Source: Gracilinanus agilis (taxonomy: Eukaryota). Taken from it: a DNA stretch of 64,000 bases. Location of the stretch: NCBI RefSeq assembly GCF_016433145.1, contig NC_058130.1:726185885-726249884 (forward strand), read 5' to 3'. The translations under genes were made by a program, and so were the position numbers. The notes under the pieces were generated by a model. That model saw only the letters and a list, made by a program, of their open reading frames with translations. It was not told where the DNA came from and searched no databases. This document shows, piece by piece, positions 2,869 through 42,352 of the stretch. Position 1 is the stretch's first letter. Every line of letters begins with the position of its first letter.

Positions 2869-2959
2869 CTTGTTTAAAGCATGGACTGGAATGTGAGGGG
2901 CATTGATGTCCTTCAGATCTCGCTCTGCATCGTACCTGAGATCATTAGAGACGCTGAAC
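2869..2959 (-). CDS. SBNO2: SBNO2 exon (exon 10 equivalent): (W)[30 protein letters not shown]
   Basis: Acceptor ggcttctgcag|G, donor AAG|gtaaga; 91 nt, phase 2/0; matches human FSVSNDLKYDAERDLRDI...VHALSK. Confidence 0.97.
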
Positions 2960-3214
2960 CTGCAGAAGCCAAAGGAGTAAAGTTACCTTCCCTGGAGAGC
3001 TCTCTCCTTTCTTTGGCCTACTCTCTCCCCTTGACATAAGATGGAAAAGGGAAGGGAGTGGGGAAAAGGAGGGGGAGACACGAATGACAATGCGGCATCA
3101 TCCAAGCCCCACTGCTGGAAAAACAGGCTGGAGCACAGAATGACAGCCAAGGTACAAGTGTAGGGAGAAAGTGAGGAGACCCCATAAATGGACTGAGGAA
3201 GGAGGAATACTAAC

Positions 3215-3348
3215 CACAGGGATTTTTTCCTGCCCTTCAGGAAGTTCTCAAAGATGATCCCAGCCACAGTCCTGCCCTTCCCAACACCGGCACCATCTCC
3301 AATGAGGAACCCGGCTCGCTGTCCATTGGGTAGTAGGACTTCATGTTG
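3215..3348 (-). CDS. SBNO2: SBNO2 exon (exon 9 equivalent): [44 protein letters not shown](W), Walker A-like P-loop
   Basis: Acceptor gattggcag|CAA, donor TG|gttagt; 134 nt, phase 0/2; [11 protein letters not shown] motif typical of SBNO proteins. Confidence 0.98.
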
Positions 3349-3992
3349 CTGCCAATCACAAGAGGAGTTAGCACTTGAAAGCTTCCTAGAGGTTGGAGTG
3401 AGTATTGGCCACCTACCACCACTAGCACAGTGACCTAGGAAGGGCCTTGTAAAATCTAAAGGGCAATGGGGCAAGAGAGAGTAGATTATGATGATGATGA
3501 TAATAACCATGTTCTTCCATTTTTATTGCTACTTCCCAAGAGCTAAGACCAAAACAAAAAACAACAGGAGAAAATTTAAAGAGGGGAGGCCTTTCTGTAA
3601 AATGCTGGCAAAATAGGGAGAGACAAGAGTGAAGAGGACAAATTTGGGGAGTTCCCAACTGATTTCGGTCCAAACTGAGACTTCTAACTTCTGAGCATGA
3701 CACCTGGTCATCTCCAGGTACATATGTGCATGCTGTCTCTTATCTTTCTCCTCCCCCCATCACTGGATATGTTAAAGCAAAGGAGGCTGGACAATGGTCT
3801 TACTGGGAATACTATAAAAAGGAAACATCTGTCATGCAGGTGACTAGTCCTTCCCAACTCAGAAATTCCATAACTCACTCAGTTAAACTGACATCTGATG
3901 TCAAAAATGGGCAAATGAGGAGGAAAATTAGTTCAAGATGTAGCAGAGATGTTTTCCCAGCACCCCAAAGTACTAGGATACACTAATAATAC

Positions 3993-4153
3993 CTGGCAGG
4001 CATAAGTGATGGCTTCTAATTGTAGTGCTGACAACGACCCACTTTCGGCTGCTGAGGTGGGCAAGGAGAGGGTATAAGTGATGTCAGGTGGAGGAACACT
4101 GGAGAGAGTACTTGTTTCAACCACACGGTCTGGGTGATGTTTTCCAATTTTAG
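3993..4153 (-). CDS. SBNO2: SBNO2 exon (exon 8 equivalent): (S)[53 protein letters not shown]
   Basis: Acceptor attccttccag|CT, donor CAG|gtatta; 161 nt, phase 1/0; start of the strawberry-notch NTPase region. Confidence 0.97.
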
Positions 4154-6565: not shown

Positions 6566-6649
6566 CTGGTAACTCACAAGCAGTGGGGTATTCGTAATAG
6601 CAGCGACTGAGTCATCCAAACCTAGAAACTGTCCTGCAGATGAGAACAG
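6566..6649 (-). CDS. SBNO2: SBNO2 exon (exon 6 equivalent): LFSSAGQFLGLDDSVAAITNTPLLVSYQ
   Basis: Acceptor ctctctttcag|CTG, donor CAG|gtgagc; 84 nt, phase 0/0; ends in the conserved TPLLVSYQ. Confidence 0.93.
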
Positions 6650-16554: not shown

Positions 16555-16701
16555 CTCTTCTTGGTTTTGTGATGGAGTGTTCACATCCCACAGAGTCTGG
16601 CTGAGGTTTTCAGCTGGCTGAAAATCTGCAGAGTCAGCAATATCTGAGAGGGAGCCAACAGGTGACGAGAAAAGGGAAGTGTCATCGAGGTATGAGGAGT
16701 C
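16555..16701 (-). CDS. SBNO2: SBNO2 exon (human exon 5 equivalent): [49 protein letters not shown]
   Basis: Acceptor ttcttttttcag|GAC, donor GAG|gtcagt; 147 nt, phase 0/0; similar to human [30 protein letters not shown]. Confidence 0.95.
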
Positions 16702-16789
16702 CTGAAAAAAGAAGACAGTCCAGAATAAAAAGAGAGCATTTGATAATTTGCATTCCATGGATATGCACTTACATTGAATACCACCTTTA

Positions 16790-16993
16790 AAAACAACAAC
16801 AACAACAACAACATCCTTGCCTTCTGTCTTAGAATCAATATTATGTATCAGTTTCAGGATAAAAGAGTGGTAGCAGCTAGGTTAAGTGACTTGCCCAGGG
16901 ACACATAGCTAGGAAGTGTTTGAAGTCAAATTTGAAACCAGGACCTGCTGTCTCCAGGCCTAGCTATCTATCTACTGAGTCACATAGCTGTCC
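16790..16993 (-). mobile_element. Older SINE1-like SINE, ~90 nt upstream of the exon 16701 acceptor
   Basis: CCTTCTGTCTTAGAATCAAT tail, AAGTGACTTGCCCAGGG core, preceded by (CAA)n. Confidence 0.75.
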
Positions 16994-18189
16994 CAACATT
17001 TTATAAATTTTATCTCATTTGATCTTTATAACACATTAGGGTTTCTAGTGTGCTAGATATTATACTAGGGAGGTACTGGGGTTACAAAGACAAAAATGAA
17101 ACAAAAGGTCATAGTCTCTAATAGAAGCCACATTTAGATAGATGGCACTTTAAGATTTACTATGTACTTTATAATTTGCTTATTGGCTTCTCACAAACAC
17201 AGTAGGAAGTGGGTGCCATTATTATCCTCATTTTACAGATGAAAGAACTGGGACAAGAAGTAACTTGCTCAGTGTCACACAACTAGTAAGTATCCAGGGC
17301 TAGATTTGAACTCAGGACTTCCTAACTCTGTGTTCAGACCTTCATGCACTATGGTGCCACTCTGATAGAAAAGTTCAGAGGGAAGACAAATATGGCTCGG
17401 GGTGAATATAGGAATTCTGATGGGAGCCATACTTCAATGCTGGATAGGGATGGGCAGAAGGTGAGTGGACCTTGAATGCCAGGCTAAATTGAGATTTGAC
17501 TTGGTGAGGAGCCGCAAAAGGTTTGGGATGAAGGAATAGCAAATACAAAATATAACAGAGAGAGAGAGAGTTCTGGAAGTTGTGGGCAGTCTGGATTGGA
17601 GCCAAGGCAACAATTATGATAACACTTTGAATTTCTATTACACTGTTCTCTCTCTGTGACAGCTCTGTGTGGGAGATGTAGGATATTCCCATTTTACACA
17701 TGAGGGCACAGGCTCAAAAAGGAATCTCAGTGGCTTCTGAAGCACAGCTGTGTGGGCTGGTGTTGATGCAGAGGGTCTGAAGAGTACTGCCCTGAGCCAG
17801 GGAGAACAGGAAGCAGGTAGTCTGAAATCCTGAGGACACCCTTAATCTTGCCCAAGAAAGGGCCTGAGGCATTAAATAGTTGGAAAAATACATATCAAAT
17901 GCCTGCCGTGGGCTAGGCACCAGGGATACCCACTGTGCTGGCTGAAAAGGGGACAGTGTAGCATCCCACACAATCCCTGCCATCACCTCAACTGCTCTGG
18001 CTACCCTGAGAGTCTCCAACACACGGAAGGCTGGGATGGACTATACCAGTGACAATCTCTTCCAAGGCACAGGGGACAAGAAGACTCCCCTAACTACACC
18101 AGGAAGAGTAATAATCTCCATCTTCTCCTAGAGCAGTACTCCTTGGATGAAATTGAACATAGCTTTCCCTCATTCTCTCCCTTCCTTCC

Positions 18190-18555
18190 TTCTTATCTTC
18201 CATCTTAGAATCAATACTGTGTATTGGTTCTAAGGCAGAAGAGTGATAAGAGCTAGATAAATGGGAGTTGTGACTTGTCTATAGTCATATAGTTAAGAAG
18301 TGTCTGAAGGGGCAGATGAGTGGCTTAGTGGACTGAGAGCCAGGCCTAGAGATGGGAGGTCCTAGGTTTAAATCTGACCTCAGAGACTTCCCAGCTGTGT
18401 GGCCCTGGGTAAGTCACTTAACCCCCATTGCCTAGCCCCTTACCACGCTTCTGCCCCAAGGTTAAGGGTTTAAAAAAAAAAGTGTCTGAGGCCAGATTTG
18501 AACCTAGGACCTCACATCTCTAGACCTGGCTCTCTATCCTCTTAGCCGCTAAACC
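18190..18555 (-). mobile_element. Older SINE split by a nested SINE
   Basis: Two halves of a minus-strand SINE flank the plus-strand copy at 18308-18480. Confidence 0.75.
18308..18480 (+). mobile_element. SINE1_Mdo-like SINE nested in a SINE
   Basis: TSD AAGTGTCTGA at 18298-18307 and 18480-18489. Confidence 0.85.
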
Positions 18556-19289
18556 GTTCCCACAGCTTACTTTTCTATAAAGCTTTATACCACAAGGCAG
18601 AGTGAAGACATATCCTCATTTTACAGAAGAACAAGCAGTCTCCGTTGAGAAGTCAACCTGCTTATATAGCTTACTCGGCAAAGACAAGCCTCTGGGCTCC
18701 AATTTCAGCCCTCGTTCCACTCTGCTACTGCTGTCTTAGAGACTACAATGAGGTCAGCCTGACCCTTGGCTATTGCCAAACCCAAGAAGCAACTCTGGGA
18801 GGAATGAACTTAGCTTCCCTTTTGATCTGTCTCACAATAAAAACCCCGTTTCCCAGCAAAATCTTCTAGAGAAGGACCATCAAAGCATTTCCCAGGCATT
18901 TGCCTTGGGCACAAAGTAATCATCACTCAGGAACAGGGAGAGTCTTGGGCTCACAGCAAACCCTGTCACTCAGACCCCTGGATTCCCAGCTGTGCAAACA
19001 TCCAGGAAGTTGAATGTCTGGATCTCTTTAGAAGTAGGAAGTTTTTCCTCAAGCCAATAAATGGGAAACTAGCTGCTTTGGAAAGACCAGGCCAATTTGG
19101 TGTCAGGATTGAATGGTCCAAGGAAGTGTCCTTATTGAAATACGCACAATCTCAAAGTACTTACACAATCCCCCCAAATAGGGAGCCAATTTTGAATAAC
19201 AGAAACACAGATTGAGAGGTGGAACAAACCTCCAATCTTAAAGCTCTGCTTGTCAGTCAACTTTAAAGTTCCTTCCACCTCTAGTTCTG

Positions 19290-19525
19290 TTATGTTGCTC
19301 AGTCATTTTAGGTATGTCTGACTCCCTGTGACTCCATTTGGGGTTTTCCTAGCAAAGATACTTGGAGTGGTTTGCCATTTCCTTTTCCAGCTCATTTTGC
19401 AGATGAGGAAACTAAGGCAAATGAGATTAAGTGACTTGCCAGGGTCACACAGCTAATAAGTTCCTGAGTCTAGATTTGAACTCGGGTCTTCCTGACTCTA
19501 GGCATGTGTCTCCTAGCTGCCCCAC
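19290..19525 (-). mobile_element. MAR1-like CORE-SINE
   Basis: Reverse complement of the MAR1 tail and core (GCCATTTCCTTTTCCAGCTCATTTTGCAGATGAGGAAACT). Confidence 0.75.
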
Positions 19526-20306
19526 TTCCAAATCTATATTCCTGTTATTCCAAACTGATTGTGCAATGGGATGGGGACAAAAGACCAAAATCAAAATAGT
19601 CCTCGAGTTTACATTCTGAGGGGGTAGGGGTGCACAAAAACATACACCTAGAAGAAACACAGCCAAGGATTGGGCAGAAAAGGTCTCATGCAGAAAGTGA
19701 CATTTGACCCAGAGTCTTGAAGAAGTCAAGGAGTTCAAGAGGCTGAGGTAAGGAGAATATTCCTGACAAGGGAAACAAGACACAGAGATGAGCATGAGAG
19801 AACTGAGTGTGAAAAACATTGAGAAAATCAATGAGAAGAGCACAGAGAGAAGAGCAGTTTATACAAATCTAGAAAAATATTTCAGAGCCAAATCACTCAA
19901 ATGGCCCATCAGATTCTGCACATGCTTGTGGTATCCAAAGGGTAACTTCTCAAGAGGAGAAGCGGGATTGGGTACCTTCATGATAGGATGTGAGGAGTTC
20001 TACAGAAGGATACCCTTAACTCCAAATGTCTCTAGCACAAGTCTGTAACCCTCATATTAGAGATCCAATTAATATGTTTAGAGGATTGAGAGCTAGAAGG
20101 GAATTTAGAGATAATCTAGTCCAAGGTCTCACTTTCACAGAGAAGGCAACAGAGACCCAGGGAAGGGGGAAGGAGCTGCCCTGAGATCATAACACTGAGA
20201 AGGAACAAGGCCAGAATTTGAATACTACTTTGCTGACTCCAAATACAGGGTTCCTGTTACTCTTCCATTATGAACTCAAATTAGATTAATTTAAATCAAA
20301 CATTAA

Positions 20307-20480
20307 GGGCAGCTAGGTAATGCAAAGAGCACCAGGTCTGGAGTCAGGAGGACCTGGGTTTAAATCTGATCTCAGAAATGTCCTGTGTGACCCTGGGCAA
20401 GTCACTTAACCTCAACTGCCCAATCCTTGTTGGTTTTCTGTCTTAGAATTGATACTAAGACAGAAAGTAAGAGTCTTTAA
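20307..20480 (+). mobile_element. SINE1-like SINE
   Basis: GGGCAGCTAGG head, GGGCAAGTCACTTAACC core. Confidence 0.7.
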
Positions 20481-21689
20481 CTAACTAAATAAACCAAACC
20501 TTTAATAAACACATACTATGAAGAGCCCCCCTTGAACCCCCCCACCCCCCTTGGAGTAGGGAACAGTCAGGATAATAGGGACTCAGGTTTTTTTCTCAGA
20601 CATCTAGACTATGTGACTCTGGTCAATTTATTTAATCTCTCTGCTTCAGGAAGTTCTCAGACTATAAATTTAAAAATTACCCATCATCTTCATCACTGTA
20701 GGAAGTTCCCATCTAGTTGAAATCTAGGCTCAGAACTATACTTCCCTAGAATACTTTGAAGAGCTTACAATTCAAAAGGGGGTACAGATACTTACCGGGA
20801 TAAAGGGAAGCCCAGGCAAAATGGATCTCATTAATAATGAGAATCAAGAGTCCTTTTTAGAAATAGCTTTTCCCACTGCTTTTTGTTTTTCTATCATAGA
20901 CATTTAGGAATCTACCCTACCTCACCCCTCAGGGAGCATTCCCTTCTTACAAAGGAGGGAGATACATTTCTTCCTATTCAAAGATTTATCACTAATTGAA
21001 ATTTTAAAAAAGGGAAAAAGAGCCCACAGTTGGCAAAGATAACCTACATACTGAAAAATCTGCCATCATGTATAATATCTCTTAATCCTTCATTTGTACA
21101 AAGAAGAGAGAAAAGCACACTTTATCTACTTGAAAAGGAACAGGAACTAGAGTGGGCTGGTTTTCCTGCATGGTAAAAAGATGGATAAGTATAAAGCATG
21201 TGGCCCTAGCAATGGTGGACTCTACATTGGGGTACCCCAGGGATTCAATGAAAAAGGATGAAGCCTTGGGGTATGGAGCTCAGAGAAGTAGGCAAGTGGT
21301 TAGGAGAGCCAACCTTATAAAGTTATGAAAGGCATATTTCCAGGGAATTTCTCTCTACTACTGAGATTAACTTTTAAAAAAGAAGGTGGAGGAGGGGAGG
21401 GGAGAAGCCCAAACCATCCTAGTAGTGAGATTTTGACCAATTTAGTCTCTGACTCTCATCAGTGGCCTTGTGGTAAGTATGGATCTTCCCTCCCCACTCA
21501 GCCCCTATATCCTCTGGCTTTTTCTAACTCTCTTACTAGGTTTGTTTCCCTTCAACCTGCCTCCATACTAGCAGGGACATCTGCTAAGAGGGAGAGCAGC
21601 TGCTACATCTGGGGTTCTAGGTAACCCTGGGAGGCGGTTTCCTCTCCTACTTTTAATTGCAGGGGGCTCCACATTCAGCAAGTCAGTGG

Positions 21690-22020
21690 GACGACTAGAT
21701 TATTTTTTAGAAACAGATTTTTGTTTGTGCATCATATAAATTTACCCCTCCCACAAAGAAATCCCCCATAACAAAGATTTTTTTTAAAAGGGGAGTTAAA
21801 TATAAAAATTCAGCAAAACCGAAATATCTCTTCTATGGGGCCAAGTTTATTCTCTATAATCCTACAACTCTGATTTTAGATTGTTCTATATGGGTTTTGT
21901 TTTTTGCATTTACATTGATCTGGTCATTCTAAACTGTTTTCTTGGCTCTGCTTACTTAACAGTATACCAGAATACATAAGTCTTTCCAAGCTTCTCTAGT
22001 CATTATATTTATCATATTTA
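21690..22020 (-). mobile_element. Ancient L1 3' fragment (tentative)
   Basis: T-rich degraded sequence resembling the old marsupial L1 3' end also seen at ~61900-62250. Confidence 0.4.
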
Positions 22021-22727
22021 GCACAGTCAGGAAGATCTGAGTTTACATCTGGGCTGAGAAACTTCCTAAATATGTGATCTTGGACAAGTCATTTAATGTT
22101 TGCCTCAGTTTCCTCAATGGTAGGATGGGGATGATAATAATAGCACTTATCTCTCAGAATTGTTAGAAGGATCAAGTGCAGTAATATGTATAAAGTGCTT
22201 AGAAGGGGGCTGGCACATGGTAGACTGCTATATCAATGCTCTCTCTGTCTCTGACTCTGTCTGTCTGTCTGTCTCTCTCTCTGTCTATCAATCATTTTAC
22301 AATAGGACTTCATTTTACATGAACTCAACACATGTGAATTGGGGTACTCACAAAAATGGCAGAAAAATATCTAACATAAAAATGTTCTCAAATGGCACAA
22401 AATCTTGGAGCAATTCTTCCAGTCACACTCACCCTGGCTCTGAGAAGTGTTACAATGAGTCACTGCATTGTTTTGCACCAAACATTAGCTCCTCCCTTGT
22501 AACAAGTAGTGTCTGCGTCAGAGCCATGCTTCTCTTTGTTTCATTAATGCTATTTAGTTATTAATAATGGCCCCAAAGTACAAGAGTGGTGACTCTGGGA
22601 GGTCTGATAAGCCTAGGAAAAATCATGGAGTGCCTACGTATGTTCATATAAGAAATACTAAATAATGGGGCTTACTATTAATGTGAGATTTTAAACTTAT
22701 GTGAAGGGTTTTGCAAAGTATTTATTA

Positions 22728-22918
22728 GGAGCATGTAGGTGGCTTGGTGGATAGAGAGCTGGGCCTGGAGACAGCAGGTCCTGGGTTCCAATGTAGACTC
22801 AGACAGTGACCTTGGGCAAGTCATTTAACCCCAACTGCCTAGCCCTTATTGTTCTTTTGCTTTGGAACTGATACTTAATATCAATTCTAAGACAAAAGGT
22901 AAGGGGTTAAAAAAAAAA
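22728..22918 (+). mobile_element. SINE1-like SINE
   Basis: GTAGGTGGCTTGGTGGATAGAGAGC head, A tail at 22909-22919. Confidence 0.75.
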
Positions 22919-23663
22919 AGTGCTGGTTATGTAAAAAGAAGTTCTCCTATACATTCATGCACAGCGATTTGTTTAGCCACTTTCCAATCAATGGGCATTT
23001 ACTTTGTTCCAGGTCTTTGCTCCCACAAAAAGTGCTACTTTAAACATTTTGCACTATGAAGGAGTTTTTTCTTACTGACCTTCCTGGGCATATGTGTGAC
23101 AGTAGAACTTTGGGTCAAAGAATAGGGCCATTTTGGCCACTTGATTTGCAAACTGAAAGGACTACCATAGAGAGGCATGTATGCAGGTGACCCAGGTGTC
23201 CAGGCTAACTCCCAGCTCTGGCATCCTGGGCCTTGATGTCCTTTCTTTCCCCATAGTCTCCACATAAGCTTGTTGATGGGCATGGAACAGGGGTGGCTGG
23301 ACAGCTCTACTCTGATGCAAAGTCCGCTACGTTGAACGACTAGTCCTCCATAATGAGCATCAATGAGCCCTGTTGTTCAACAAAATTGTAACAATCTGAT
23401 AGGGACACACTTCTTCAGTTTCAGAGCTGAAAGTGACACTAGACTAGCTCACAGAATTCAACTTCATTTCATTTTTGGAAAAAGACGCCTACAAGGATGA
23501 GGAACCCACCCAAGGTCATGCCAGTCAGTGGTATAGGCAGGCCAAGATCCCAGTATGCAGCCTGGTGCTCTAGGCAAGAAAGAAAGCTTTCTTTGTGTCA
23601 TGCCTAAGGGCAATACATTTCTTTCTCTTTAGTTTAAAAAAAAAATCAAAAAACCTTACCTTA

Positions 23664-23868
23664 GGGGGCAGCTGGGTAGCTCAGTGGATTGAGAGCCAGA
23701 CCTAGAGATGGGAAGGTCCTAGGTTCAAATCTGGCCTCAGACACTTCCCAGCTGTGTGACCCTGGGAAAGTCACTTGACCCCCATTGCCCACCCTTACCA
23801 CTCTTCTGCCTAGGAATCAATACACAGTATTGACTCCAAGAAGGGTTTAAAAAACCAACAACAACAAA
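23664..23868 (+). mobile_element. Young SINE1_Mdo-like SINE inserted in the tail of an older antisense SINE
   Basis: TSD AAAAAACCTTACCTT 23648-23662 vs AAAAAACTTTACCTT 23869-23883 (1 mismatch). Confidence 0.88.
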
Positions 23869-23883
23869 AAAAAACTTTACCTT

Positions 23884-24030
23884 CTTGGAATCAATACTAT
23901 GTGTTGGTTCTAATGTAGAAGACAATTAAAGGGTAGGCAATGTGGGTTAAGTGACCTGCCCAGTCTCTGAGGCCAGATTTGCTCCTGTCTCTAGGCCTTC
24001 CTCTCAATCCACTGAGCTGCCTAGCTGCTC
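23884..24030 (-). mobile_element. Older SINE1-like SINE
   Basis: Reverse complement of head and core; tail interrupted by the previous element. Confidence 0.75.
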
Positions 24031-24804
24031 CCAATGCACTTCTTTATTAAACTGGATTTGATTGCCTCCATTGGATGTGATGGTTTTTATTCAAATAATT
24101 ATAGAACTGGAAGATTAATAAATTCATTGAAACTCTACTCAAAGCATGAATCTCCTCTAAAATACACAGACCAAGGTTGTCCAGCCTCTATCTGAAGATA
24201 CCCAGTAGTGGGGAATTCATTCCTGGAATCCCCCTTCCTCCCAGAGAAGGAAATGAGAATCATACCAATAATAATAAGAGCTAATTTGCATGTATTGGTT
24301 TTTAATGTTTAATGTTTGTAAAGTGTTTATCTATCATTTGGCTGCATAAGAACCTCTCAGCTTCTGCAAATAACAAATGAGAGATTCAGAAAGAAAGTCA
24401 TATGTCTCTAGTCACATAGGAGTAGGATTAGAACTCACGACTTTACTGATTCCAAGTCCAAGGTTTTTTTCTACTACTATGTTGCTTCTAAACAAGAACC
24501 AAACTACTCAGAGAAAATGAGGATGGCACAACCATTTACAAGACTGCCAGGAGTCTGAAACTAATATAGAAGAAAATCTTCTCTCTCTGGCACCAAACAA
24601 AGCACCCCCCAAGAATGTTCTGCTGTACATGACGGGAGTGATGGCCAGGCATTCTGCCCAGCTCATGGGAAGCAAGGGGAGAGAAGCAGGAAGAGATCAA
24701 GGTCTCAAGAAAACAAAAGGTCAAGGTATACAAATTTGCCTGTTACCACTAGTGGGCTAATAAAATGAGATTTTTCCAAAAAGCATTCAATAAACCTTTA
24801 TTAG

Positions 24805-25060
24805 AGGCAGCTGTGGCTTAGTGGTTTAAGAGCACTGGCTCTGCAGTCAGGAAGATGAATTCAAATCCAACTGTAAACACTTATTGGTGGTGTGATCCTG
24901 AGCAAGTCACTTAATCTCTGATTGAATGACAAAAAGATCCACTGGATCTACTGCAGAAGGAAATGGCAAAGCACTCCAGTATCCTTGCCCAAAACAACAA
25001 CAACTCATAGAGAGCTATTGTCCATGGGGGTCACCAAGAGTCAGACATGAATGAACAACA
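24805..25060 (+). mobile_element. MAR1-like CORE-SINE
   Basis: Head, core and AAGGAAATGGCAAAGCACTCCAGTATC...GGGGTCACCAAGAGTCAGACATGA tail. Confidence 0.75.
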
Positions 25061-27062
25061 AAACATTTATTAAACATCTTCTCTGTGTCAGGCATTGTGC
25101 TAAGGGCATGGAGATATGAATAAAAGAAAGGCCAATCATTATCCTCATGGAGTTTACAATCCAATGGGGGAAGGCAAAAGGAGGAACCTGGCATGAGATT
25201 TCCTGGAGGAGAAACCAATCAGAGCTACTGAGGAAAATGGAAATGTATTTACATGAAGGAATGAAATTATATAATCAGATGATCCTGGTTCTAGAGCTGG
25301 CTCTGCCCCTTCCTGATCTTCCCATAAAATGAAATAATATTGGGACAGTCTCTACTTCCCCAGGCTGCAAGAGTTCCATACAATTGTATGCCATTAACCA
25401 GACATAAAAAGAAGCTCGGGCTTCTACAACACATGAATACTTACAAAGTGTTTACTTGATAGCATTAGGCCTCATAAGAATCTCACAACCCTATGAAGTC
25501 AATACTACATGCAATTCCATTCTGCAAATGACATTTACGAAAAGCTCTCCTCAAAGCAAAACCTGTAAAGAAGGCAGTGCAAGGATTACTCTTGCCATTT
25601 TAAAGAAAGGAAAACTGAGACTGAGAGAGGGGAAGGGGTATGCTCAAGGACAAACAATAAGTGGTGGAACTGAAACTCAAACCCAGATGTCTATAAGAGG
25701 ACTACAGAAAAACTCCAGTGGCCCACTTACATTTGTGGAAGAGGGAGAATACAACAGAAGTCACCCCAAAGGTCAATTCCCCTAATGATGCAGGGTGATT
25801 AGATAAAGCCCCTTACCTTGGAGGAAGAGGGATTATTAGACAGAAACAGTTGGAGTATATGTAAGTACAAACCCCTGATGCCAACAAAATTCTACCAACC
25901 CTTGAGTTTAGCCTTCTATGCCCTATGAATGAGGTACATAGGAGGCTACTTACCCTTTGATGGATACAGTTGAAAGAGACTTGCATACTTTTTGTCTACC
26001 TCTGTGTAAAATCACACAGCCCTTAACATCAATTAGGGGTCTGACCATTGGACTAGTATCCAGATTGAACAAACTATAACTTTCAGGGTGTGGCCATATT
26101 TGTGATTTCATTTCCCAGATCAGTAAATATAAGAAAATTAGAGAGAGGAAAATAAAGTAGAAATGAATATGTTTATTTACTAAACTGGTTCATCCCCAAT
26201 AAATCCTAGAGTCAGATCAACTAAGTATGAATTTTAACTTATATTCCTTACAGTCACAAACACCTAAGCTGCAAACTTATATGAAGTAAATCATAAAAAA
26301 ACACCCCAAGAGCTCACATTTATATAGTGTTTTAATATCTACAAAGATAGGTATGTCATCCTATGATGGCATTTGGAAGAAGTATGTTCAGGCAATTAAG
26401 ATTTCATAGGATGGTTACAGCTTTCAAAGAAAATTCTATCATAAAGAAGAGTAGCACAGGCAGTAATGGGATGCAACTGGAATGCTTGCACAGGAATGTC
26501 CACAATGACAGGATCACAGGACCATTTGAGTATTTTAGTATGATGGGAAATGAATGTTGGACCTGGAAGTCAGAAGACAGGTGGGCCCCACTTTGACCTC
26601 CCTAACTCCCTCTGCCTGGTACTATAGCAACCTGGATTTACTTCTTATTCTCCAGCTCGACTGAGCTCCAAGGAGGCAGAGCCTAATTTTAGCTCACTTT
26701 AAATAGCCTTCAGGAACTCAGACAGAGGTATGAACATAGAATATGCCTTGTAAAGTCCCCTGATCTGTTTCAAAACTGGCTCCAACAAAGACTAGTTATG
26801 CAAGTATGGGCAAGTAACAGCCTCCCTGAATCTGTCTTCTCTTCTGGAAAATAGGGGCAATAATACTTATAGCTACTTGACCTCAAAGAACTACTGAGGG
26901 AAATGCTTTAAAAACCTTAAAATATTATAAAAATTGAAACAGTTGTTATATCCCCCATAGATCCAAGATCCACATTGCAAATGATTAGGAAATGGTTGTC
27001 TAATGAATGAATGGATTGACTATGTTTCCAACCAGTCTAAAATTTTGGCCAAGTATCAGACT

Positions 27063-27066
<4 letters not shown>

Positions 27067-27110
<44 letters not shown>
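27067..27110. repeat. (CA)n microsatellite
   Basis: About 22 perfect CA units. Confidence 0.97.
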
Positions 27111-27112
<2 letters not shown>

Positions 27113-27129
27113 TGGTAGAATTAAAGCAC

Positions 27130-27400
27130 ATTAGAGCAGAAAAAACTGGAAAGAAAGTAGGTGCAACTGACTGGGGAATTACTAAATGAATTGTGATACA
27201 ATAATGTAATGCAGTATTAGAGCACTATCAGAAGCAACAAACATATAAGAATTCTGAGAAGCATGGAAAAACGTGAACTGATGCAAAACAAAGAACCAAA
27301 AAGAAAAAAATACACAATGGCTCAAATGATGTAAATTAGTAGAAAACTAACTTTTCCACCTCCCTTCCACAAAAATTTTCATGAAAATGGTCACTGTGTA
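27130..27400 (+). mobile_element. Ancient L1 ORF2 3'-end fragment
   Basis: GACTGGGGAATTACTAAATGAATTGTGATACAATAATGTAATGCAGTATTA resembles the L1 'IGEWLNKLWY...MEYY' coding segment. Confidence 0.55.
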
Positions 27401-28699
27401 ATTAGAATCAGTTAGTAGTCAATAAACATTATTAAATGCCTACTATGTGTCAGCAGAAGCACTAAGAATGCAAAAAGAGGCAAAATAAATAAAGTCCCTA
27501 CCATCAAGAAGCACAGTTTAATGATCACCATGCTTGACCAACCCTGTTGAAGAGGTAAGAAAACATACCTCCTTTCCCACTTTGCAGAGAGAAGGAGAAA
27601 TATTGCACATACTGTTTGACATAGCTAATTTGTTGGCTGATTTTGCACAACTTTTTCTCTCCTTATTTTTAATCTTTGGCTGGTTTTCTGGGTACAGGAA
27701 GACAAAGGAACATATTCAGAAATGAAGATAACATAAAAACAAAAAACTGGAATAACCCCCCCCCCCCAAATATCTGGTTTGATGGAATCTTGGCCAGCAC
27801 TTTTGTTCTTCTGGCACAGGCTCTAAGATCTGAGAGTCACTTCCACAACACTGTTGTCAAGGGAGAGACTGCAGAGTTCAATTAGTCCTAACCTACCCCT
27901 AATTTTAAACATGGAAAAACTAAGGCCCATAGAGAAGAAGGAACTTGCCCAAGGTCATACAGTTCCATTGTGGTAGTGCTGGGACTTGTAGTCCAGTGGC
28001 CCCATGGTACCATGCTCTGATTTTCTGGATTCTACCTATGGGGGAAGTTGAATAACTTAATTAAGAGCCTGGGCAGACATAGACAATCAAATGCTGTAGC
28101 AACAGTTAGTCTTGGGTTAATCACTCTCCACAGGGTACTGTCTCATGCTCTGTCCAGTCAGGCTAAAGTGTCTCAAGTGACAAGGCTAATTCTATTTAAA
28201 AATCCCAGTGCAATCTCATAAAATGGTGAGAAATGAGACCAAGGTCAAGTTACCAGGCAAAAGGGCCCTCTGGGACAGACCCTGAATGAATAATAAGCCT
28301 AAAAGCTGCCATTCCCTCTTTCCCCCAGCTCACTTATTAACCTGTTCTCAAGACTAATCATTTCTTCTGCTTTAAGTGATGGAGCTAAGTGGAAAGAGCA
28401 ATGAATATGGAAGGGTGGCAGAGGACCAAAGATTCTGATCTGCAACTTGAAGAACCTGAGGTTGAATCCTGACACTATTTATCATCTCAGGCAAGCTACA
28501 TCCCATCTCTAGGCCTTAGTTCATTTTTTCAATGGAAGAGTTTGAATTGCATAACCTCTAAGGTCCCTTTTCTTAGTTACAATCTCAAGAATCTGAGTTT
28601 TCCATTTTAACTAACTAACCATGGGAAAATGACTCTTCAGTTTCTTCATTTGTAAAATAATACTTTCATAGAAAGGTTGGGAGGATTAGCAGACACAGC

Positions 28700-28880
28700 A
28701 AAGTGGGCATGTAGGTAACTCACTGGATTGAGAGCCAGACAGTCCTAGGTTTAAAAAACCTCAGACACCTCCTACCCATGTGACCCTAGGCAAGTCACTT
28801 AACCCCTATTGTCTATCCCTTACTACTCTTCTGCCCTGGAACAAACACAATTGATTCAAAGACAGAAGGTAAAGGTTGGG
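28700..28880 (+). mobile_element. SINE1-like SINE
   Basis: CTCACTGGATTGAGAGCCAGAC head, GGCAAGTCACTTAACCC core. Confidence 0.75.
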
Positions 28881-30071
28881 TTTTTTTTTTCCTTTCCTTT
28901 TTTTTTTTAAAGGAAAGTTATAAGGAAGAAATAGAATTATAGCTATCAAGTACTTTGGAAGACATAATGCTATAGAAATATCAGCTGTTATTATTATTCA
29001 CAACACAGAGATTTCTGCAACTTTCTGCCTATGCTTTCTCACCTGAGAAAAGTCATGAAAAAGACTAAAGGAGCAGCAGAAATGACCAGGATGGAAGAAA
29101 GGTGGCATAGCCACACGAGACTGACATTCCAGCTAATCAATCAGTATATATTTATTAATGATCTACTTTGTGTGAGATACTAGATTAGGCACTGGGGAAA
29201 CATCGACAGAAATGAAATAGTCCCTCCCCTCAAGGAGTTTATAATCTATAATAATAGCTAACATTTAGATAATATTTTAAGGTTTGCAAACTGCTTTCCA
29301 AATATTTCATTTAATTCTCATGACAACCTCAGGAAGAAGGTGATTTTAATTATTCCCATTTTACAGGTGAGGAGGAAGCTAGGGCAGACAGAAGTGAAGT
29401 GACTTGCCCAGGGTCACACAGCTTTGAAGTGTCTAAGGCTGGATTTGAAGGTAGATCTTCCAAGCCCAGAGCTCTATTCACTGTATCATCCAGCTGCCTC
29501 ACAGTCTAGCCAGAAGAACACACACATATATAGCTAGATAAGAGACAGAAGGTAATAGGGGAAAGGGAGACAACTCTAGCAGTATCAGATAAAGTTTCAT
29601 GTAAAAAGTGGCACTTGAGATAAAGTTTAAAGGAGTTGTAGTGGAGGTGAAAGTGTATTGCAAACATTGTCAAGGCACAGAAAGGAGATGGGGAACAGTA
29701 AGAAGACCAGTCTGACTGGACTATAGTGTGTATGGAGTAGAATAAAGTATAAGAAAGGTTAGCAAGGTAGGTTGGAGTCAGGCTAGAGTAGGCTTTAAAT
29801 GATAAGACAAGTTTACCTTTGTACCTAGAAGCCATAGTTAGCCAGGAGAAAACACAAGGCGACACCAGCACTTGAGGACAAACCTTTGTGGCGACAGCAG
29901 CTATGTAGAGGATGGATCAGGGTAAGGAAAACTTGGGGCCCAAACTCCTGATTCCTTCCTATCAGGAAGGTTGGATTCTGAGGATTGCCCTCAGCCTATG
30001 ATGTCAAAATAAGGGGATAGTTTTACATTGGGTTAAAAAAAAAAAAAAAAGACTTATAGGACTGTCCATAT

Positions 30072-30267
30072 CAGTGATTCCCAAACTTTTTTGGCCTACC
30101 ACCCCCTTTCTAGAAAAAATATTACTTAGCCCTCTGGAATTTTTAAAATTTTTAAAAATTTTAATAGCAATTAATAGGAAAGATAAAGGCACCTGTGGCC
30201 ATCACCGCCCCTCTGGATCACTGCAGCACCCACCTGGGGGTGGTGGCGTCCATTTTGGGAATCACTA
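30072..30267. mobile_element. hAT (Charlie-group) MITE, 196 bp
   Basis: TIRs CAGTGATTCCCAAA (30072-30085) and TTTGGGAATCACTA (30254-30267; 1 mismatch); perfect 8-bp TSD GTCCATAT at 30064-30071 and 30268-30275. Confidence 0.92.
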
Positions 30268-30277
30268 GTCCATATCA

Positions 30278-30465
30278 AGGGCAGCTAGGTAGCAAAAAGG
30301 ATAGATTGTCAGGCTTAGAGTCAGGAAAATCTGAGTTCAAAATTGGCTTCAGATACTTTCTAGCTATATTGTGTGGCCCTGGGCAAGTCATTTAGTCCCA
30401 GCTGCTTAGCTTTGCTACTCTGTTTTAGAAGTGAGACAGAAAGTAATGGTTTAAAAAAAATTTTT
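30278..30465 (+). mobile_element. SINE1-like SINE immediately after the MITE
   Basis: GGGCAGCTAGG head, GAGTTCAAAATTGGC, GGGCAAGTCATTTA core. Confidence 0.7.
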
Positions 30466-33400
30466 AAATAAAACAAATACCTGCCAAACTGCTCTGTAGT
30501 TTCACTAGAAGTTCTTGTCAAATAGGGAATTCTTCCCTCAGGAAATGAATGTTCTTCGACTTATCAAACACTGGGGTGAGTCCAATTGTTGCTGGCTATT
30601 CTATAACCTGACAACCTCAGGTTCTTCTTCCTTTATGCCTACTCTTTTTTTTTTTTAATTTCCCTTGAGCCTCTAGACTTTTTGTAACCCAGCTTTTGGC
30701 CTTCCATACTGAAAAGGCTATTTATTTAACCACCTCTTCCTCCAAGTACCATAATGTATGATGCTGTGAGGGAACATAGATTACAATCTTTCCACTGCTA
30801 TTAAAGACCCTTCTTTATAACTACTTTGGTATAGCAGGACCTCATTTTACAGGAACTCAAAACGCTTGAATTTCAGCTTCTGTGGAAGGTCACATAAAAT
30901 AGGACCTAGTGTCTGTCCTTGGTTTTTCTCAGGTTGACAAGGCTCAAAACCACTTTGTAAGGACAGTGGGTCAGTCAGTCAAAAAGCATTTAGTATGTAC
31001 CTACCATTTGTCAGGCATTATATTAAGTGCTTTACAAATGAGGATGATCTTTATTATCCTTAATTAGCAGATGAGGAAATTGAGTCTCAGAAGTCATGTA
31101 TCTTTTGCCCAATGAGTAAGTCTGATACCAGTAAGTGCCTGAGTCAGGATTACAACTCAGATCTCCTGCAAGAGAAAGCAGGATAGGATAGAGCACTGAT
31201 TCTAGAGTCAGAGGACCTAGGTTCAAATGATCCTCTTCCCTTTGTAAGTTGAAGGAACCTAAGCAAGTGACTCCTCTTCTCTGGGTCTCAGATTTCTCAT
31301 TTGTAAAATGAAGTCCTCAAACTAGATAGCCATTAAGATTCTCTCTAGGCTGAGGCCTTGAGCCACTCCTCCTCACAGCCTGAGGCTGCCTCCTGGTAAT
31401 AGGGCACTTTCTGGTTCATCTCATTGGATCCTTCCACTGCCATTGGGAGGCAAGGAATAATAATTCTTCATATTCTCATCTTGCAACAAGATGATGAGGT
31501 TTAGAGAAGGAAGGCACATGCCCAGGCTCACAGACCTTATAAGTGGTGAGCCCAGGCATGGATCTAAGGTCTCTTGGCTCCAAATATAAGCCTCTATTAT
31601 ATTATAGTACTACAAGTCTCTTCTAGCTTTAAGATTTTTTTCTGTTCACTTTTGGAGACAGGGAGGTGGGCATAAAGCAACTAACATGGGTCTATTAAGA
31701 AAACCCCCCTGGGGGTAATAATGCCTTTGCCTAAGAACACCAAAGAAGTATAGTAGAGAGTGCCTTGGCACTTGGAGCTGATGAAGTAGGCCCATGTTTG
31801 GGTTTGTGACAAGCCCTGGGACTCAAAGAGAAACAGCATGGCTTAAGGCAATAAGCCCTGTATTTAGAAACAGGGTTGGGGTTCTAATGCTAACCCTGCT
31901 CTCTATTGCCGGCAGTGTAATCTCAGACAATTCATGAGGCCTCAATTCCTCATCTGAAAGGAGAAGGTTGGCATAGATGAGCACTCCAAGGTACTTTCTA
32001 GATCTAAAGCCTATGATGCCACAATCTACCTGAGTTTGAGTTTTGATAAAGCACATGACAAATCTCATGTGGCCTCCCTGCAACATGGCCTTGGGAGAGA
32101 CATAATTTCTGAAAGAGTTCCAGAAATATGGACAATGATTATTCCCTTTGGAAGAAACAAAACAGAGGGAACAAAAGGTGAAGTTTTGCCTGTTTCTGGT
32201 ACAGAGATTTGACTCCAAGATCTTTTCTTCCAAGTTGCAGCTGTTGAAGCTATTTCAGTTTCTTCAAACTAAGCAACATGCTTTTCAAAAATAGCATGTG
32301 AAAATAAAGAAGTACTAAATTTGGAAAGTTTGCACCCAGAAACATTCTTTGGAAAGATGGGAGAGGTTGTAAAGCAGATTTCTAACCTACAGTGATAACT
32401 GCAGTAGTTAAAATAACCAATGAGCAAATAAGGAATTTCTGAAGCCTACTAGTGCCTCAAACCTAAGTTTGAAGGCCAATGAAGAAGAGCTGCTAATATA
32501 ATCTTAACAGGTTAGTAGGGAATCTAAGTCAGGTTCAGAGATATAACAAGGTCTATAAAATCAGGTGTCAATTTAAAAATGCTGTTCCTTACATTTAAGC
32601 TCTCACGTGGGGCTTTCTGGTCAATAAAGTGTCAAGAGTCTAAACAAACCCTAAAGACAACTGTTAGCAGGAACCTCTCCTTCGCAATTGCACAAGCTTT
32701 TTTTTTTTGGATCCCCAGAGCATAGCACACAATTAACGCTTGTGGACCAGACCTGACCTGACACAAGCTTTTGTTGGAAGACTTCACCATGTACCCAGGG
32801 CTGTGACTACTCTATTTCTTGACAGCTCTCAACAAGGTATTTTTCTTTCTAACATCCCCCCATAAGAGCTCTCAGGCCCAAGTTCTGAATTCTGGAGCCA
32901 AAGAGAACCAAGATGATCCTTCTTCCCCTCTTGAGAGAGAGAAATCATGGCACCGTTTCTGATCCAAGCTCAGCATGTCCATTTCCCTCAAATAATCTTC
33001 ATATACTACAGTTTAAAGTCCCTTTGCCAAGACTTTGAGCAGATCGGAGTTTACCAAAGGATCCTAACTCAATCCTCACTGTAGATGCCACTCAAGCACT
33101 TCGTGCTGCTTTCTCTTGGGTTGAAGATGATTCTGGAGTTCTGCTCAGGGAGTTCATGGGCCCAGGACTAGACAATCTGGCAGATGGGGTGTAGTCTCAT
33201 CAAGTGCAAAAAAAAAAGGAAGGGGGAAAAAAAGGCTCATCACCAGGTAGGGTAGTGCCTGCACAGCAACTCTCAAAGACCTAGGAAGTCATGGAAGCTC
33301 TATAATTGGAATAAGTTAGAGAAGATGGACCATCTGGGGGAATCTGAGGAAGCTCTTCAGACTTTAAAGTGCTTTCAACAAACCCAATTTGGTCCTCTTA

Positions 33401-33852
33401 AAGCTAGGTGCCACAGGAAAGAGCTGGAGGAAGCATGGTCTGGTGGAAAGTGAAAACCAAGTCTAGAGACAAAAGATTTTAATTCCCTTTTAGGTACTCT
33501 GGCAAGTCAATTGCTCTGAACCTGTTTCTTCATCTGTAAAACAAAGGGTTTGGATGAGATGGACTCTATGGTTCCTTCAAGCTTTCTATCTATGATTCTG
33601 TGGACACACAATTATTATCCCCATTTGGTATATCTGAAGTACATACTTAGTGAAAGAAAGTAACTAAGAGAACCTAGGCATCCTGACTCTTGTGTTCTCT
33701 TTCAGGCAGTATCCTTCTTAGTCCAAATCGACTTGATCCAGTGAAAATTCTCAGTTCTTCTAGCTCTATGTGTCTCTATAAGCAACTTCAAACCCCAGAT
33801 AATCCTTTCTGAAAAACTGAGTGGAAGGTAATGTCATAAATTAAAGGATTAG

Positions 33853-34035
33853 GGGGCAGCTGGGTAGCTCAGTGGATTGAGAGCCAGGCCTAGAGATGGG
33901 AGGTCCTGGGTTCAAATCTGGCCTCAGACACTTCCCAGCTTTGTGACCCTGGGCAAGTCACTTGACCCCCATTGCCCACCCTTACCACTCTTCCACCTAT
34001 GCGCCAATATATAGAAGTTAAGGGCTCAAAAAAAA
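33853..34035 (+). mobile_element. Young SINE1_Mdo-like SINE, ~475 nt into the first intron of the short isoform
   Basis: Near-consensus GGGGGCAGCTGGGTAGCTCAGTGGATTGAGAGCCAGGCCTAGAGATGGGAGG... with A tail. Confidence 0.92.
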
Positions 34036-34509
34036 AATAGATAAAGGAGTAAAGGAGAAAGGGGGGAAGGGGGGAGGAAGGGAAGGAAAGAGCCAGGTAG
34101 ACTCAGAGAACACAGGAAGCCAGAACTCCAGAGTACCTTAGAACACAAAGGACCTTTGATGACCCCTTTTTTAGCAAAAAGATGTGAAAAATGAGGCACT
34201 GAAGGGGAAATGATTTGTACAAAGTTGCAAAGAGGCAGAACTAGAATCCAGGTTTCCAGCCTCTAAGTCACCCCCCCATCCAACTCTCCCCTTCTTGAAA
34301 GTGTCAAAGGCTTGCAGAAAACTTTAAAACTTAAGTACAATATAACCCTTTTCCAAGTGTCCCAACCCCTACCCCTTCCATTTTCTAGCTTCACTAAAAT
34401 GCTTTGTTGGCTAGTAGCCAACTCCCAGAAATTGTGAACTCTGACATGGGCTCTCTTTCCCAAGTCCAACAAGAGACAGGCACAGAGACAAGGGCATGCT
34501 TGGCATTAC

Positions 34510-34554
34510 CTGGTTTAGTGCTGAGAACTGTAGCCAAAACTGCATCTGGGCCAT
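34510..34554 (-). CDS. SBNO2: SBNO2 alternative first coding exon (short isoform): MAQMQFWLQFSALNQ
   Basis: ATG in strong Kozak context (tAgcATGG), 15 codons, donor CAG|gtaatg at phase 0, in frame with exon 16701. Closely resembles the recalled human isoform-2 segment MSQLQLWLQFEALNK. Confidence 0.88.
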
Positions 34555-35210
34555 GCTACAAGGACACTGGACTCAGAGCAGCCCACAGGACAGGCTCCCC
34601 TTTCACACCAAAGCAGGGGGAAAGCCACATTCATGACAGCAGCAGCAACATCAGCAGCAACAGCAGGAGTAGCCTTTCAATGCCAAGGGCTCAGGCAAGC
34701 AGCAGAAAGAAAACTGGCAAAGAGGGAGAAGAGCCTGAGGTGGCCCCCCTGGCTGGGAGGGGACAGACAGAGGCAAGGCTGCTCTCAGGCTCAGCACAGG
34801 AGATTTGCATAGGCTGTTTAGTCATGTAGCCTCAGCGCCTACTTCCTCTAAGGCCAGGGCTGACTTTCAGGAAATGATGTCTGCTTGGTAAGTCAGTGAA
34901 ATTACCGGCAGTGTGATGAGAATTACTGTATGTGGTGTAATTGAGCTGCTGAGACACTGTAAACAAAGCTGACCTCTTCAATGGGCTTTGATTTCACGTG
35001 GGACAGAAAGGAAGCCTCCAGCTACCTGGCCCTTGATGAAGAGGCTGCCCATTTCTTCATTTTTCTTTTAGCAGTCAGTCAAAGCCCCCAGCCTTTAGCT
35101 TCCAGCTTTGTGTGTATGTATGGGGGGAGGGAGGGGAGAAGGAGGGAATATGAGAGAGAGCATAGGGTGAGGGTGTGGAGATTTTAAGGACACACTTTTT
35201 TATATGAGAC
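34555..35210 (-). promoter_or_regulatory. Putative 5' leader and internal promoter of the SBNO2 short isoform
   Basis: Repeat-free stretch directly upstream of the alternative ATG. Contains octamer ATTTGCAT 34803-34810, ETS ACTTCCT 34841-34847, STAT-like TTTCAGGAA 34865-34873, FOX GTAAACA 34959-34965 and E-box CACGTG 34995-35000. TSS not determinable from sequence. Confidence 0.6.
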
Positions 35211-36914
35211 TGACATGAAATAAATATTAAAACAAGTATTTTAAGAGGCAGTGCAGAAGACTATGATTTGGAAATCTCAGGATCCAATTCTGACTGATTT
35301 ATTATATGGGCTAGTCCCATTAAATCAGAAAATACCAATGCTTGGAGACTGTCATCTTGTAATTGAGGAAACTGAGGCCCACTAGAGAAAGGAACCTTCT
35401 CAGAGGTGATGCAAGTGTCAGAGCAGGGACTGGCCCCAACCTATACTGCCAAGTCCAAAGGTCCTACTGTGACACACCCTGCCTTCCCCACATTTCCTCT
35501 CATGGCTTAGTTCCTAAGGTGGATGGAAACTGTTAGACCAGATAGCTGCTCTCAGGCCCCTCTGGTTTCAACATTTAAGAATTCAAGGGCTGCCTACAAA
35601 ACCCCACTTCCTAGTTACATGACCCTGGGCAAATTAACCATTGACCTAGCTCTTGCCCTTTTCTCTTAGAGTTGTTACTAGGACAAAAAGTAAGGGTTTA
35701 AAAAACAAAACAAAAAACCAGTTCTAGCATCTCAAAAGTACCACCTCCATCCTCTCCATACCATCCCTTCTCTTATCAAACAGCAAACAAAGAAACAAGT
35801 CTGACAACCAATGACTAGCCAATTAAAGTCTCCCAGAGTCATCCTAACAATTAGATCACCTGACTAATCTTCTCAGGAAGGCAAGCAGCACTCTAAAAGC
35901 ATGAAACTGGGCTCCTTTTGAGGAGAGGCTAATTCTGAAATCACCTTTTTTAAAGACAAACATGATAATGGAAGTCTCAGTCAAGTGTCACCAGGGCCAG
36001 CTCACTAACGCCCTTTGCCAAAAAGGGAAGGCTGAGTGCCAAAAGGGGCACTTATCTATGTGAGGAGCAAAGAGAGATGTGGTAAACAGGAGATTACCCA
36101 TTCATCCCCAAGGTCCTAATCTGAATTTTCTGCCTAGGGCTAAAGGGTTTATCTAATCTATCAGTTTACAGAGAAGGAAACTGAGGCCCTAAAAGGTGAA
36201 GGGACTAGTCCAAAGTCATCAAGGAAATAGGCTGATTTTGCAATTCTCTTCAGGTCTAGGTTAATGTCCCACCTTAGCAAGAAGCCTCTTCCAGGCCTCC
36301 TAAATCTTGGTGCCTTCCCCCTGCAATGATTATCCTGTCCATATGTTCTTTGTACATAGATGTTTGCAAATTGTCTTTCCCCTTAAACCATGATCTCCTA
36401 AAGAGAAGAGTCTGGTTTTTTAACACTCTTTAGTATCCCCATGGTTTAGCACAGGGTCTACACATGGTTATCGTTTACTAAATGCTTCCAGACTGACAGG
36501 GTGAAGTAGTGAAACTAGGTAATTCAAATTCAGCCTTCTTCTCATCTGTAAAATGAATGGGTTGGACTCAACAGTATACCACTCTTCCCCTCATAATCCA
36601 ATGGTTCTCTGAGGTAAGTCAGTCTACTTTCCTGGGGCTGAACCCCACCCTCAGCCATACTGTCTTACTCCAAAGGAAGCTTCAGACTGAATGTGGAGGT
36701 AGGTCCTTAAAAGTTGTAGAATATCAAGAGTTGGAAGGGACCTCTGAAAGCAGAGGGAACAACCCCTATCTGAAGTAGGAACAGCTTTTATCATATCCCC
36801 AACAAGGGGAAATCCAGTCTTTGCACAAATACTTCCATAAACAAGCAATTTATTGGCTATAAAACCAATCTTCCATTTTCAGATGGCTTGAATTGTTAAT
36901 AACTTCTCCCCTAG

Positions 36915-41269: not shown

Positions 41270-42352
41270 ACAGGGGTCTAATTACTCAAATACACAAGGA
41301 GTTAAAGCAATTACATAAAAAATCAAGCCATTCCCCAATTGATAAATGGGCAAGAGACATGAATAGGCAATTTTCAGGTAAAGAAATCAAAAGAATCAAT
41401 AAGCACATGAGAAAGTGTTCCAAATCTCTAATAATTAGAGAAATGCAAATCAAAACAACTCTGAGGTATCACCTCACACCTAGCAGATTGGCTAAAATGA
41501 AAGAAGGGGAGAGTAATGAATGCTGGAGGGGATGTGGCAAAATTGGGACATTAATGCATTGCTGGTGGAGNNNNNNNNNNNNNNNNNNNNNNNNNNNNNN
41601 NNNNNNNNNNNNNNNNNNNNNNNNNNNNNNNNNNNNNNNNNNNNNNNNNNNNNNNNNNNNNNNNNNNNNTGCCCTTTGATCCAGCCATACCATTGCTGGG
41701 TTTGTACCCCAAAGAGATCATAGATAAACAGACTTGTATGAAAATATTTATAGCTGTGCTTTTTGTGGTGGCAACAAATTGGAAAAGGAGGGTATGTCCT
41801 TCAATTGGGGAATGGCTGAACAAACTGTGGTATATGCGGGTGATGGAATACTATTGTGCTAAAAGGAATAATAAACTGGAGGAGTTCCAGGCAAACTGGA
41901 GAGACCTCCGGGAACTGATGCAGAGCGAAAGGAGCAGAGCCAGAAGAACATTGTACACAGAGACTGATATACTGTGGTAAAATCGAATGTAATGGACCTC
42001 TGTACCAGCAGCAATACAATGACCCAGGACAATTCTGAGGGATTTATGGTAAATATGCTACCCACATTCAGAGGAAGGACTGCAGGAGAGGAAACATATA
42101 AGAAAAACAAAAAGCTTGATCGCATGGGTCGGGGTGGACATGATTGAGGGTGTGGACTCAAAACTACCACACCAATGCAACTACCAAGAATTTGGAAATT
42201 GGTCTTGATCAAGGACACATGACAAAACTAGTGGAAATGCGCATAGGCCATGGGTGGGGGGAGTGGAGGGGGGGGGGTGAAGGGGAAAGGAGGAGCATGA
42301 ATCATGTAACCATGTTAAAAATGTATATTAATAAATGTTAAAAAAAAAAAAA
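41270..42352 (+). mobile_element. Relatively young 5'-truncated L1 (ORF2 C-terminus, 3' UTR, polyA), spanning an assembly gap
   Basis: ORFs MNRQFS...MQIKTTLRYHLTP...CWRGCGKIGTLMHCWW and LLGLYPKE...CPSIGEWLNKLWY...MEYY; AATAAA 42330-42335; A13 42340-42352. Confidence 0.95.
41571..41669. other. Assembly gap (99 N)
   Basis: Run of N inside the L1 ORF2. Confidence 1.

Follow-up and report, generated by a model that had tools for sequence, protein, structure and literature searches.

SBNO2 and a candidate alternative first exon

The window, by which we mean the whole stretch of 64,000 nucleotides analysed here, has a very low CpG content and long introns with a mammalian L1. Its minus strand carries the beginning of an orthologue of the immune regulator gene SBNO2, in a mammal that is not placental and is probably a marsupial. 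At 41359-41980, ORFs with L1 ORF2-like sequence lie on both sides of a gap of 99 N (41571-41669). The features of the gene are as follows; exons 3 to 7 were located by tblastn with the SBNO2 protein of the killer whale (Orcinus, P0013) and their limits were set by splice sites.

34573..34575 (minus strand): TGA in frame with the start codon of exon 1b and 21 nt upstream of it, with no in-frame ATG between the two
34510..34554 (minus strand): coding part of the putative alternative first exon 1b, an ATG and 14 further codons encoding MAQMQFWLQFSALNQ, phase 0 at its end
16702..34509 (minus strand): intron 1b, 17,808 nt, GT...AG
16555..16701 (minus strand): exon 2, common to both isoforms, 147 nt or 49 codons, DSSYLDD...QNQEE; acceptor ttttttcag, and GTCAGT after its end
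6566..6649 (minus strand): exon 3, 28 codons
5646..5742 (minus strand): exon 4, 97 nt, with an acidic stretch
3993..4153 (minus strand): exon 5, 161 nt
3215..3348 (minus strand): exon 6 with the P-loop, Pfam AAA_34 (PF13872)
2869..2959 (minus strand): exon 7, 91 nt

The identity of the gene was established from individual exons, each compared singly. Exon 2 is 59-73% identical to vertebrate SBNO2 fragments, and a HMMER search of the full library with this exon alone as the query returned 17 representatives, P0013 among them. The tblastn search with P0013 yielded 6-7 colinear exons on the minus strand of the window, whose phases are consistent after trimming to the splice sites. The minus-strand ORF at 2983-3510, which contains the P-loop, matches Pfam AAA_34 (PF13872) with an E-value of 4.9e-20; its score of 72 bits is well over the cut-off, which is 27. 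Proteins of the strawberry notch family (Drosophila sno, SBNO1 and SBNO2) go with the Pfam domains AAA_34, Helicase_C_4 and SBNO; the P-loop exon of the window matches the first of these and its exons are colinear with those of placental SBNO2, and Helicase_C_4 and SBNO would fall outside the window, which has only the 5' part of the gene.

Neither residues 1-110 of the long isoform nor its three coding exons found a match anywhere in the window, including the region from 35 to 64 kb, by tblastn and blastn. Two weak long-isoform matches at 24.5 and 39.6 kb are full of stops and were discarded as noise. The long-isoform coding exons probably lie beyond position 64000.

A first-pass annotation, made from the letters of the window, had described the exon at 34510-34554 as a 45-nt exon that opens with an ATG at 34554, is followed by a 17.8-kb intron and is joined in phase 0 to the DSSYLDD exon at 16701; all of this is correct on the minus strand, and the in-frame TGA at -21, the A at -3 and the G at +4 that it reported can likewise be read in the letters. 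The junction between exon 1b and exon 2 is phase 0 to phase 0, and the donor, CAG/GTAATG, agrees with MAG/GTRAGT at 7/9 positions. The same bare anatomy (an ATG flanked by a purine at -3 and by G at +4, an open frame of 10-40 codons, a G/GTR donor) is shared by 13-14 ORFs on each strand of the window. A start codon in Kozak context, an open frame and a donor were therefore rejected as sole evidence for an exon; since this anatomy is not beyond chance, it is homology that decides on exon 1b.

Short SBNO2 isoforms are known from mouse and human. In the mouse, 74 residues are missing from the short form and another 15 are different (Grill 2015, PMC4676294); the work of Hutchins 2012, as given in Grill 2015 (PMC4676294), traces this form to an alternative promoter that has a STAT3 site. 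For human isoform 2, the shortening amounts to 57 residues and the difference to 36 (Aschenbrenner 2024, PMC11133462); it is regulated by LPS and IL-10, and Crohn's-associated isoform QTLs are found at its promoter (PMC11133462). In cells of both mouse and human, STAT3 ChIP peaks lie at the promoter of isoform 2 (Brandstoetter 2023, PMC10646773), and the isoform has been linked both with risk variants for Crohn's disease and with blood cancers driven by STAT3 (PMC11133462, PMC10646773).

Exon 1b and its peptide across placental mammals

SBNO2 DNA from six placental mammals was compared with the window: red deer (L001), African grass rat (L002), narwhal (L003), sengi (L004), slow loris (L005) and armadillo (L006). 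These loci cover all four superorders, with one species each for the sengi and the armadillo lineages. Exon 1b is present at the orthologous place in 6/6 of them, always as an ATG with exactly 15 codons followed by AG/GTAA. The distance from exon 1b to exon 2 is 2.4-4.6 kb in the placental loci and 17.8 kb in the window, where it is 4-7 times longer; with an intron stretched to this degree, one would look for the long-isoform exons past position 64000, in agreement with the lack of any match to them in the window. In the four placental loci that include the long-isoform exons, three long-isoform coding exons are followed, after 6-14 kb, by exon 1b. At the other end of the gene, a gene for glutathione peroxidase (GSHPx) is arranged tail to tail with SBNO2, some 2-3 kb downstream, in the deer (L001, 23086-23132) and in the narwhal (L003, 23038-24006). 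Human SBNO2 has the same neighbour (GPX4).

The peptide was also compared at the protein level. A word search with residues 112-330 of P0013 listed 120 placental SBNO2 proteins, and in about 20 of the listed isoforms the last 15 residues of a unique N-terminus, immediately ahead of the DSSY exon, have the consensus MSQLRFWLQFAALNK. The window 15-mer is identical to most placental 15-mers at 9-10 of 15 positions. Every stop-free 15-mer in the six-frame translation of the window was then scored against ten distinct placental peptides; exon 1b ranked 1/54,968 against these short-isoform N-termini, with a score of 53.7 (z 9.1) compared to 20.1 (z 4.6) for the runner-up. Together with the presence of the same exon at six placental loci, this bears out the proposal of the first-pass annotation that the window contains a conserved first exon of a short SBNO2 isoform. 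The peptides of the sengi, MSGLRLWLRLAALGQ, and of the armadillo, MSRLRCWLQLAALRQ, count against an orthologous reading in that just 6-7 of their 15 residues are identical to the window peptide.

The window agrees with the mouse short isoform (XP_006513560.1) in having a unique N-terminus of exactly 15 residues followed by shared exons, and in the place of its promoter, which would be internal to the gene and downstream of the long-isoform coding exons. Two rodent relatives of the mouse, Arvicanthis and Phodopus, read MSQLRFWLQFAALNK, which is 10/15 identical to the window and differs in five residues. The rodent intron 1b measures 3.0 kb against the 17.8 kb of the window. The corresponding human transcript is that of isoform 2 (ENST00000438103), which has the same alternative first exon as the window and whose promoter is STAT3-bound and regulated by IL-10 and LPS. 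The analysis of these likenesses indicates that exon 1b and its promoter in the window are the orthologues of the published mouse and human exon and promoter and no new kind of element; the exon and about 140 nt of promoter would thus have been kept since the split of marsupials and placentals.

Although the length of the coding part is fixed at 45 nt in all seven sequences, the adjacent leader has indels whose lengths are not divisible by three. The exon differs between the window and the placentals with a pS of 0.52-0.75 and a pN of 0.16-0.37, giving pN/pS ratios of 0.22-0.71 and, pooled over all pairs, of 0.40 on 14 codons; this argues mildly for constraint at the level of the peptide. Across 11 distinct 15-mers, positions 4, 6, 10 and 13 are hydrophobic throughout. 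The pattern Q-x-Q-x-W-L-Q-F-x-A-L-N, put forward in the first-pass annotation as conserved across therian mammals, holds as a consensus and not as a strictly conserved motif, as only M1 and L8 are invariant in that set. The amphipathic helix that had been suggested along with it finds no support: the helical hydrophobic moment (Eisenberg) is not above that of shuffled sequences in any of the seven peptides, and the value for the window, 0.08, is below the shuffle mean. An AlphaFold2 model of the grass-rat isoform X4 (P0113; alignment A1, 25 close sequences) has a helix at residues 3-12, which we set aside as untrustworthy at a mean pLDDT of 33.6. As a guess, the 15 residues may serve as a hydrophobic contact or as a stability element.

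A buffalo gene model (P0041, Bubalus isoform X7) has PVFQ inserted between the 15-mer and DSSY, which would result from splicing to another acceptor, 12 nt before the start of exon 2; at this place the window has FFFQ.

The conserved block upstream of exon 1b

When the whole placental loci were compared with the window by blastn, a single non-coding segment matched at E<1e-4, and its conservation equals that of the coding exons. Its features, all in the orientation of the gene, are given below.

34803..34941 (minus strand): conserved non-coding block of 139 nt, between -387 and -249 relative to the ATG; presumed core promoter of the short isoform
34928-34920 (minus strand): motif CAGTAATTC
34896-34887 (minus strand): motif CTGACTTACC
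34879-34860 (minus strand): stretch of 20 nt that includes the GAS-like site and is identical in the window, loris, deer and narwhal
34865..34873 (minus strand): GAS-like site TTCCTGAAA, 8/9 positions in agreement with the STAT3 consensus TTCCNGGAA
34841..34848 (minus strand): GAGGAAGT, presumed ETS/PU.1-type core, with GGAAG in all seven sequences
34824-34816 (minus strand): motif TGACTAAAC
34803..34810 (minus strand): octamer ATGCAAAT, present in the window, loris, grass rat, deer and narwhal

Identity to the loris, grass rat, deer and narwhal is 77-87% over 93-139 nt, with E-values of 1e-20 to 1e-27; for the armadillo it is 72% over 89 nt (E about 1e-6) and for the sengi about 75% over 48 nt (E 0.004). 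The SBNO2 exons of the window differ from every placental copy, yet its promoter is placental-like; this, the very low CpG and the long introns with a mammalian L1 fit a marsupial. On sequence comparison, the block appears to be the orthologue of the placental promoter of this isoform. The distance from the octamer to the ATG, about 250 nt in the window, is about 140 nt on the rodent side of the comparison.

The factor names attached to these motifs are putative, that of GAGGAAGT as an ETS/PU.1 site included. By analogy with the mouse and human promoters, the GAS-like site may have a STAT3 role in the window; inducibility and STAT3 binding have been shown for the mouse isoform. The strict GAS motif, TTCNNNGAA, does not occur within 33.5-36.5 kb, that is, 1.5 kb to either side of exon 1b. 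There is no CpG island at the promoter and leader of exon 1b, and Rfam gave no match at 34000-35600. The results of a scan for bacterial promoters and terminators were disregarded as irrelevant to a vertebrate gene. Perfect palindromes of the STAT3 type (TTCCNGGAA) are found only three times in the window, at 24220, 55406 and 57934; one lies in intron 1b and two lie 21-23 kb upstream of exon 1b, and none is in a block that can be aligned with the placental loci. For functional work, the conserved block narrows the promoter motifs worth mutating to a few.

Leader, start codon and the short isoform

The segment between the block and the ATG would form the 5' leader of the short transcript. It contains three upstream ATGs, of which one has a purine at -3.

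34555..34802 (minus strand): presumed 5' leader, with a CTG/CAG repeat and upstream ATGs at -97, -80 and -76
34515..34634 (minus strand): uORF of 39 codons that opens with the ATG at -80 (GTCATGA, G at -3), is out of frame and ends inside exon 1b

The imperfect CTG/CAG repeat, of about 10 units at 34636-34666, is directly upstream of the GTCATGA ATG and is absent from the placental loci. A leader ATG is present in the window and in five of the six placental loci, with the following positions relative to the start codon of exon 1b.

Red deer: -45, in frame, GTCATGA
Narwhal: -45, in frame, GTCATGA
Slow loris: -63, in frame, GCCATGA
African grass rat: -73, out of frame, GTCATGA; in-frame TGA at -72
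Sengi: -37, out of frame, GTCATGC
Window: -80, out of frame, GTCATGA; in-frame TGA at -21
Armadillo: none within 300 nt

The annotated proteins differ accordingly in their N-termini. Among the listed isoforms, the 15-mer alone is the start in the grass rat, dwarf hamster, squirrel, star-nosed mole and cattle hybrids, while in the sifaka, mole, elephant seal, buffalo, deer and peccary it follows on 15-21 extra residues encoded in frame, and in whales on 35. The 36 unique residues of human isoform 2 fit 21 + 15, and the loris and the sifaka have a 21-residue extension before the 15-mer. Such an extension cannot be encoded by the window, given the TGA at -21, to which the first-pass annotation had pointed, and a leader ATG that is out of frame; the grass rat is like the window in both respects, with its leader ATG out of frame and an in-frame stop before the start. 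The 15-residue N-terminus is the only version that all sampled lineages can encode. Because the marsupial outgroup, Afrotheria, Xenarthra and the rodent all lack an in-frame extension, it is reasonable to regard the 15-residue start as ancestral and the extension as having arisen within Boreoeutheria, which is the simplest history the sequences allow. This supports the earlier proposal that the second methionine of the human protein is the ancestral start, with the extension in frame in the DNA of the loris, deer and narwhal only. The in-frame extensions of 15, 16, 18 and 21 codons differ from one another by whole codons, and they could be translated and somewhat constrained in those lineages. 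Of two further word searches, one with residues 1-40 of the sifaka protein (P0097) returned 7 proteins, with no further primates and no human entry, and the other, with the exon 1b ORF read into the intron, found no match, a result that is uninformative on longer proteins.

We consider it probable, at roughly 0.85, that 34554-34510 is the coding part of an internal alternative first exon of SBNO2 which gives rise to a short isoform behind a deeply conserved promoter, that the 15-codon start is common to the marsupial and the four placental superorders, and that longer N-termini stem from a leader ATG that is in frame by chance. Transcription would start downstream of the promoter block at 34941-34803, with its GAS-like site, ETS/PU.1 core and octamer, so that the leader of the short isoform would carry upstream ATGs; translation would begin at the ATG at 34554, and a phase-0 splice would join exon 1b to the shared exon at 16701. 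In the resulting protein, 15 residues would replace roughly 90-110 N-terminal residues of the long isoform, which are encoded by three coding exons outside the window. In primates, carnivores, moles and cetartiodactyls, the longer N-terminus would go back to a leader ATG whose frame agrees by accident.

The exon and its promoter could be real and the protein nevertheless start elsewhere than at 34554, either because transcription begins far upstream and the ATGs at -97, -80 and -76 capture the ribosomes, or because the exon is internal and is entered through the AG at 34556-34555. The ATG at -80 with its G at -3 and its uORF overlapping the main ATG speaks for such capture, and the three upstream ATGs would hamper initiation at 34554 if transcription starts upstream of them; a possible acceptor, ccttgtag/c, just before the ATG speaks for an internal exon. 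Against both stand the main ATG itself, which has a purine at -3 in 7/7 sequences and CC at -2/-1 in the six placentals, the conserved promoter block just 249 nt upstream of it, and the placental gene models, which begin their coding sequence in exon 1b, while an AG acceptor before the ATG is found at 0/6 placental loci. A different start is therefore improbable in our judgement.

We regard it as more improbable still that the conserved DNA serves solely as promoter or enhancer, that the likeness of the 45 nt comes from constraint on the DNA, and that no short isoform is produced in the lineage of the window. A 15-mer is short, a pN/pS of 0.2-0.7 on 14 codons is weak and the invariant positions are M1 and L8 alone, all of which such an account would accommodate; but the ATG, the exact length, the open frame and the GTAA donor have been kept in seven lineages next to a leader whose length is free, and synonymous differences are near saturation where amino-acid differences are not. 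The least credible account is that exon 1b is a chance mini-ORF with a GT after it. Its one advantage is the 13-14 ORFs per strand with the same bare anatomy, and it is refuted, as far as sequence can show, by the z of 9.1 in the six-frame scan with nothing else near and by the orthologous position of the exon relative to exon 2 and to the conserved block.

Within the preferred reading of exon 1b as the first exon of a short isoform, a more tentative and on balance unlikely idea is that the leader ATG, shared by the window and 5/6 placental loci, is ancient and serves to switch translation. An out-of-frame ATG, as in the marsupial, rodent and sengi, would begin a uORF that runs across the main start codon and lowers the output of the STAT3-induced isoform; an in-frame one, as in primates, carnivores, moles and cetartiodactyls, would give a poorly conserved extension and thus two proteoforms. 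If this were true, the disease-linked human isoform 2 would mainly, or also, be 21 residues shorter than annotated. That the 15 residues are the one N-terminus which the sampled lineages have in common is a reason to ask which start human cells use, and which protein isoform-specific experiments should express.

The whale SBNO2 models (P0027, P0030-P0033) start with MQMRPGG... at an ATG inside the octamer ATGCAAAT, at about 3001-3010 of the narwhal locus (L003); this start is probably an artefact of annotating the longest ORF.
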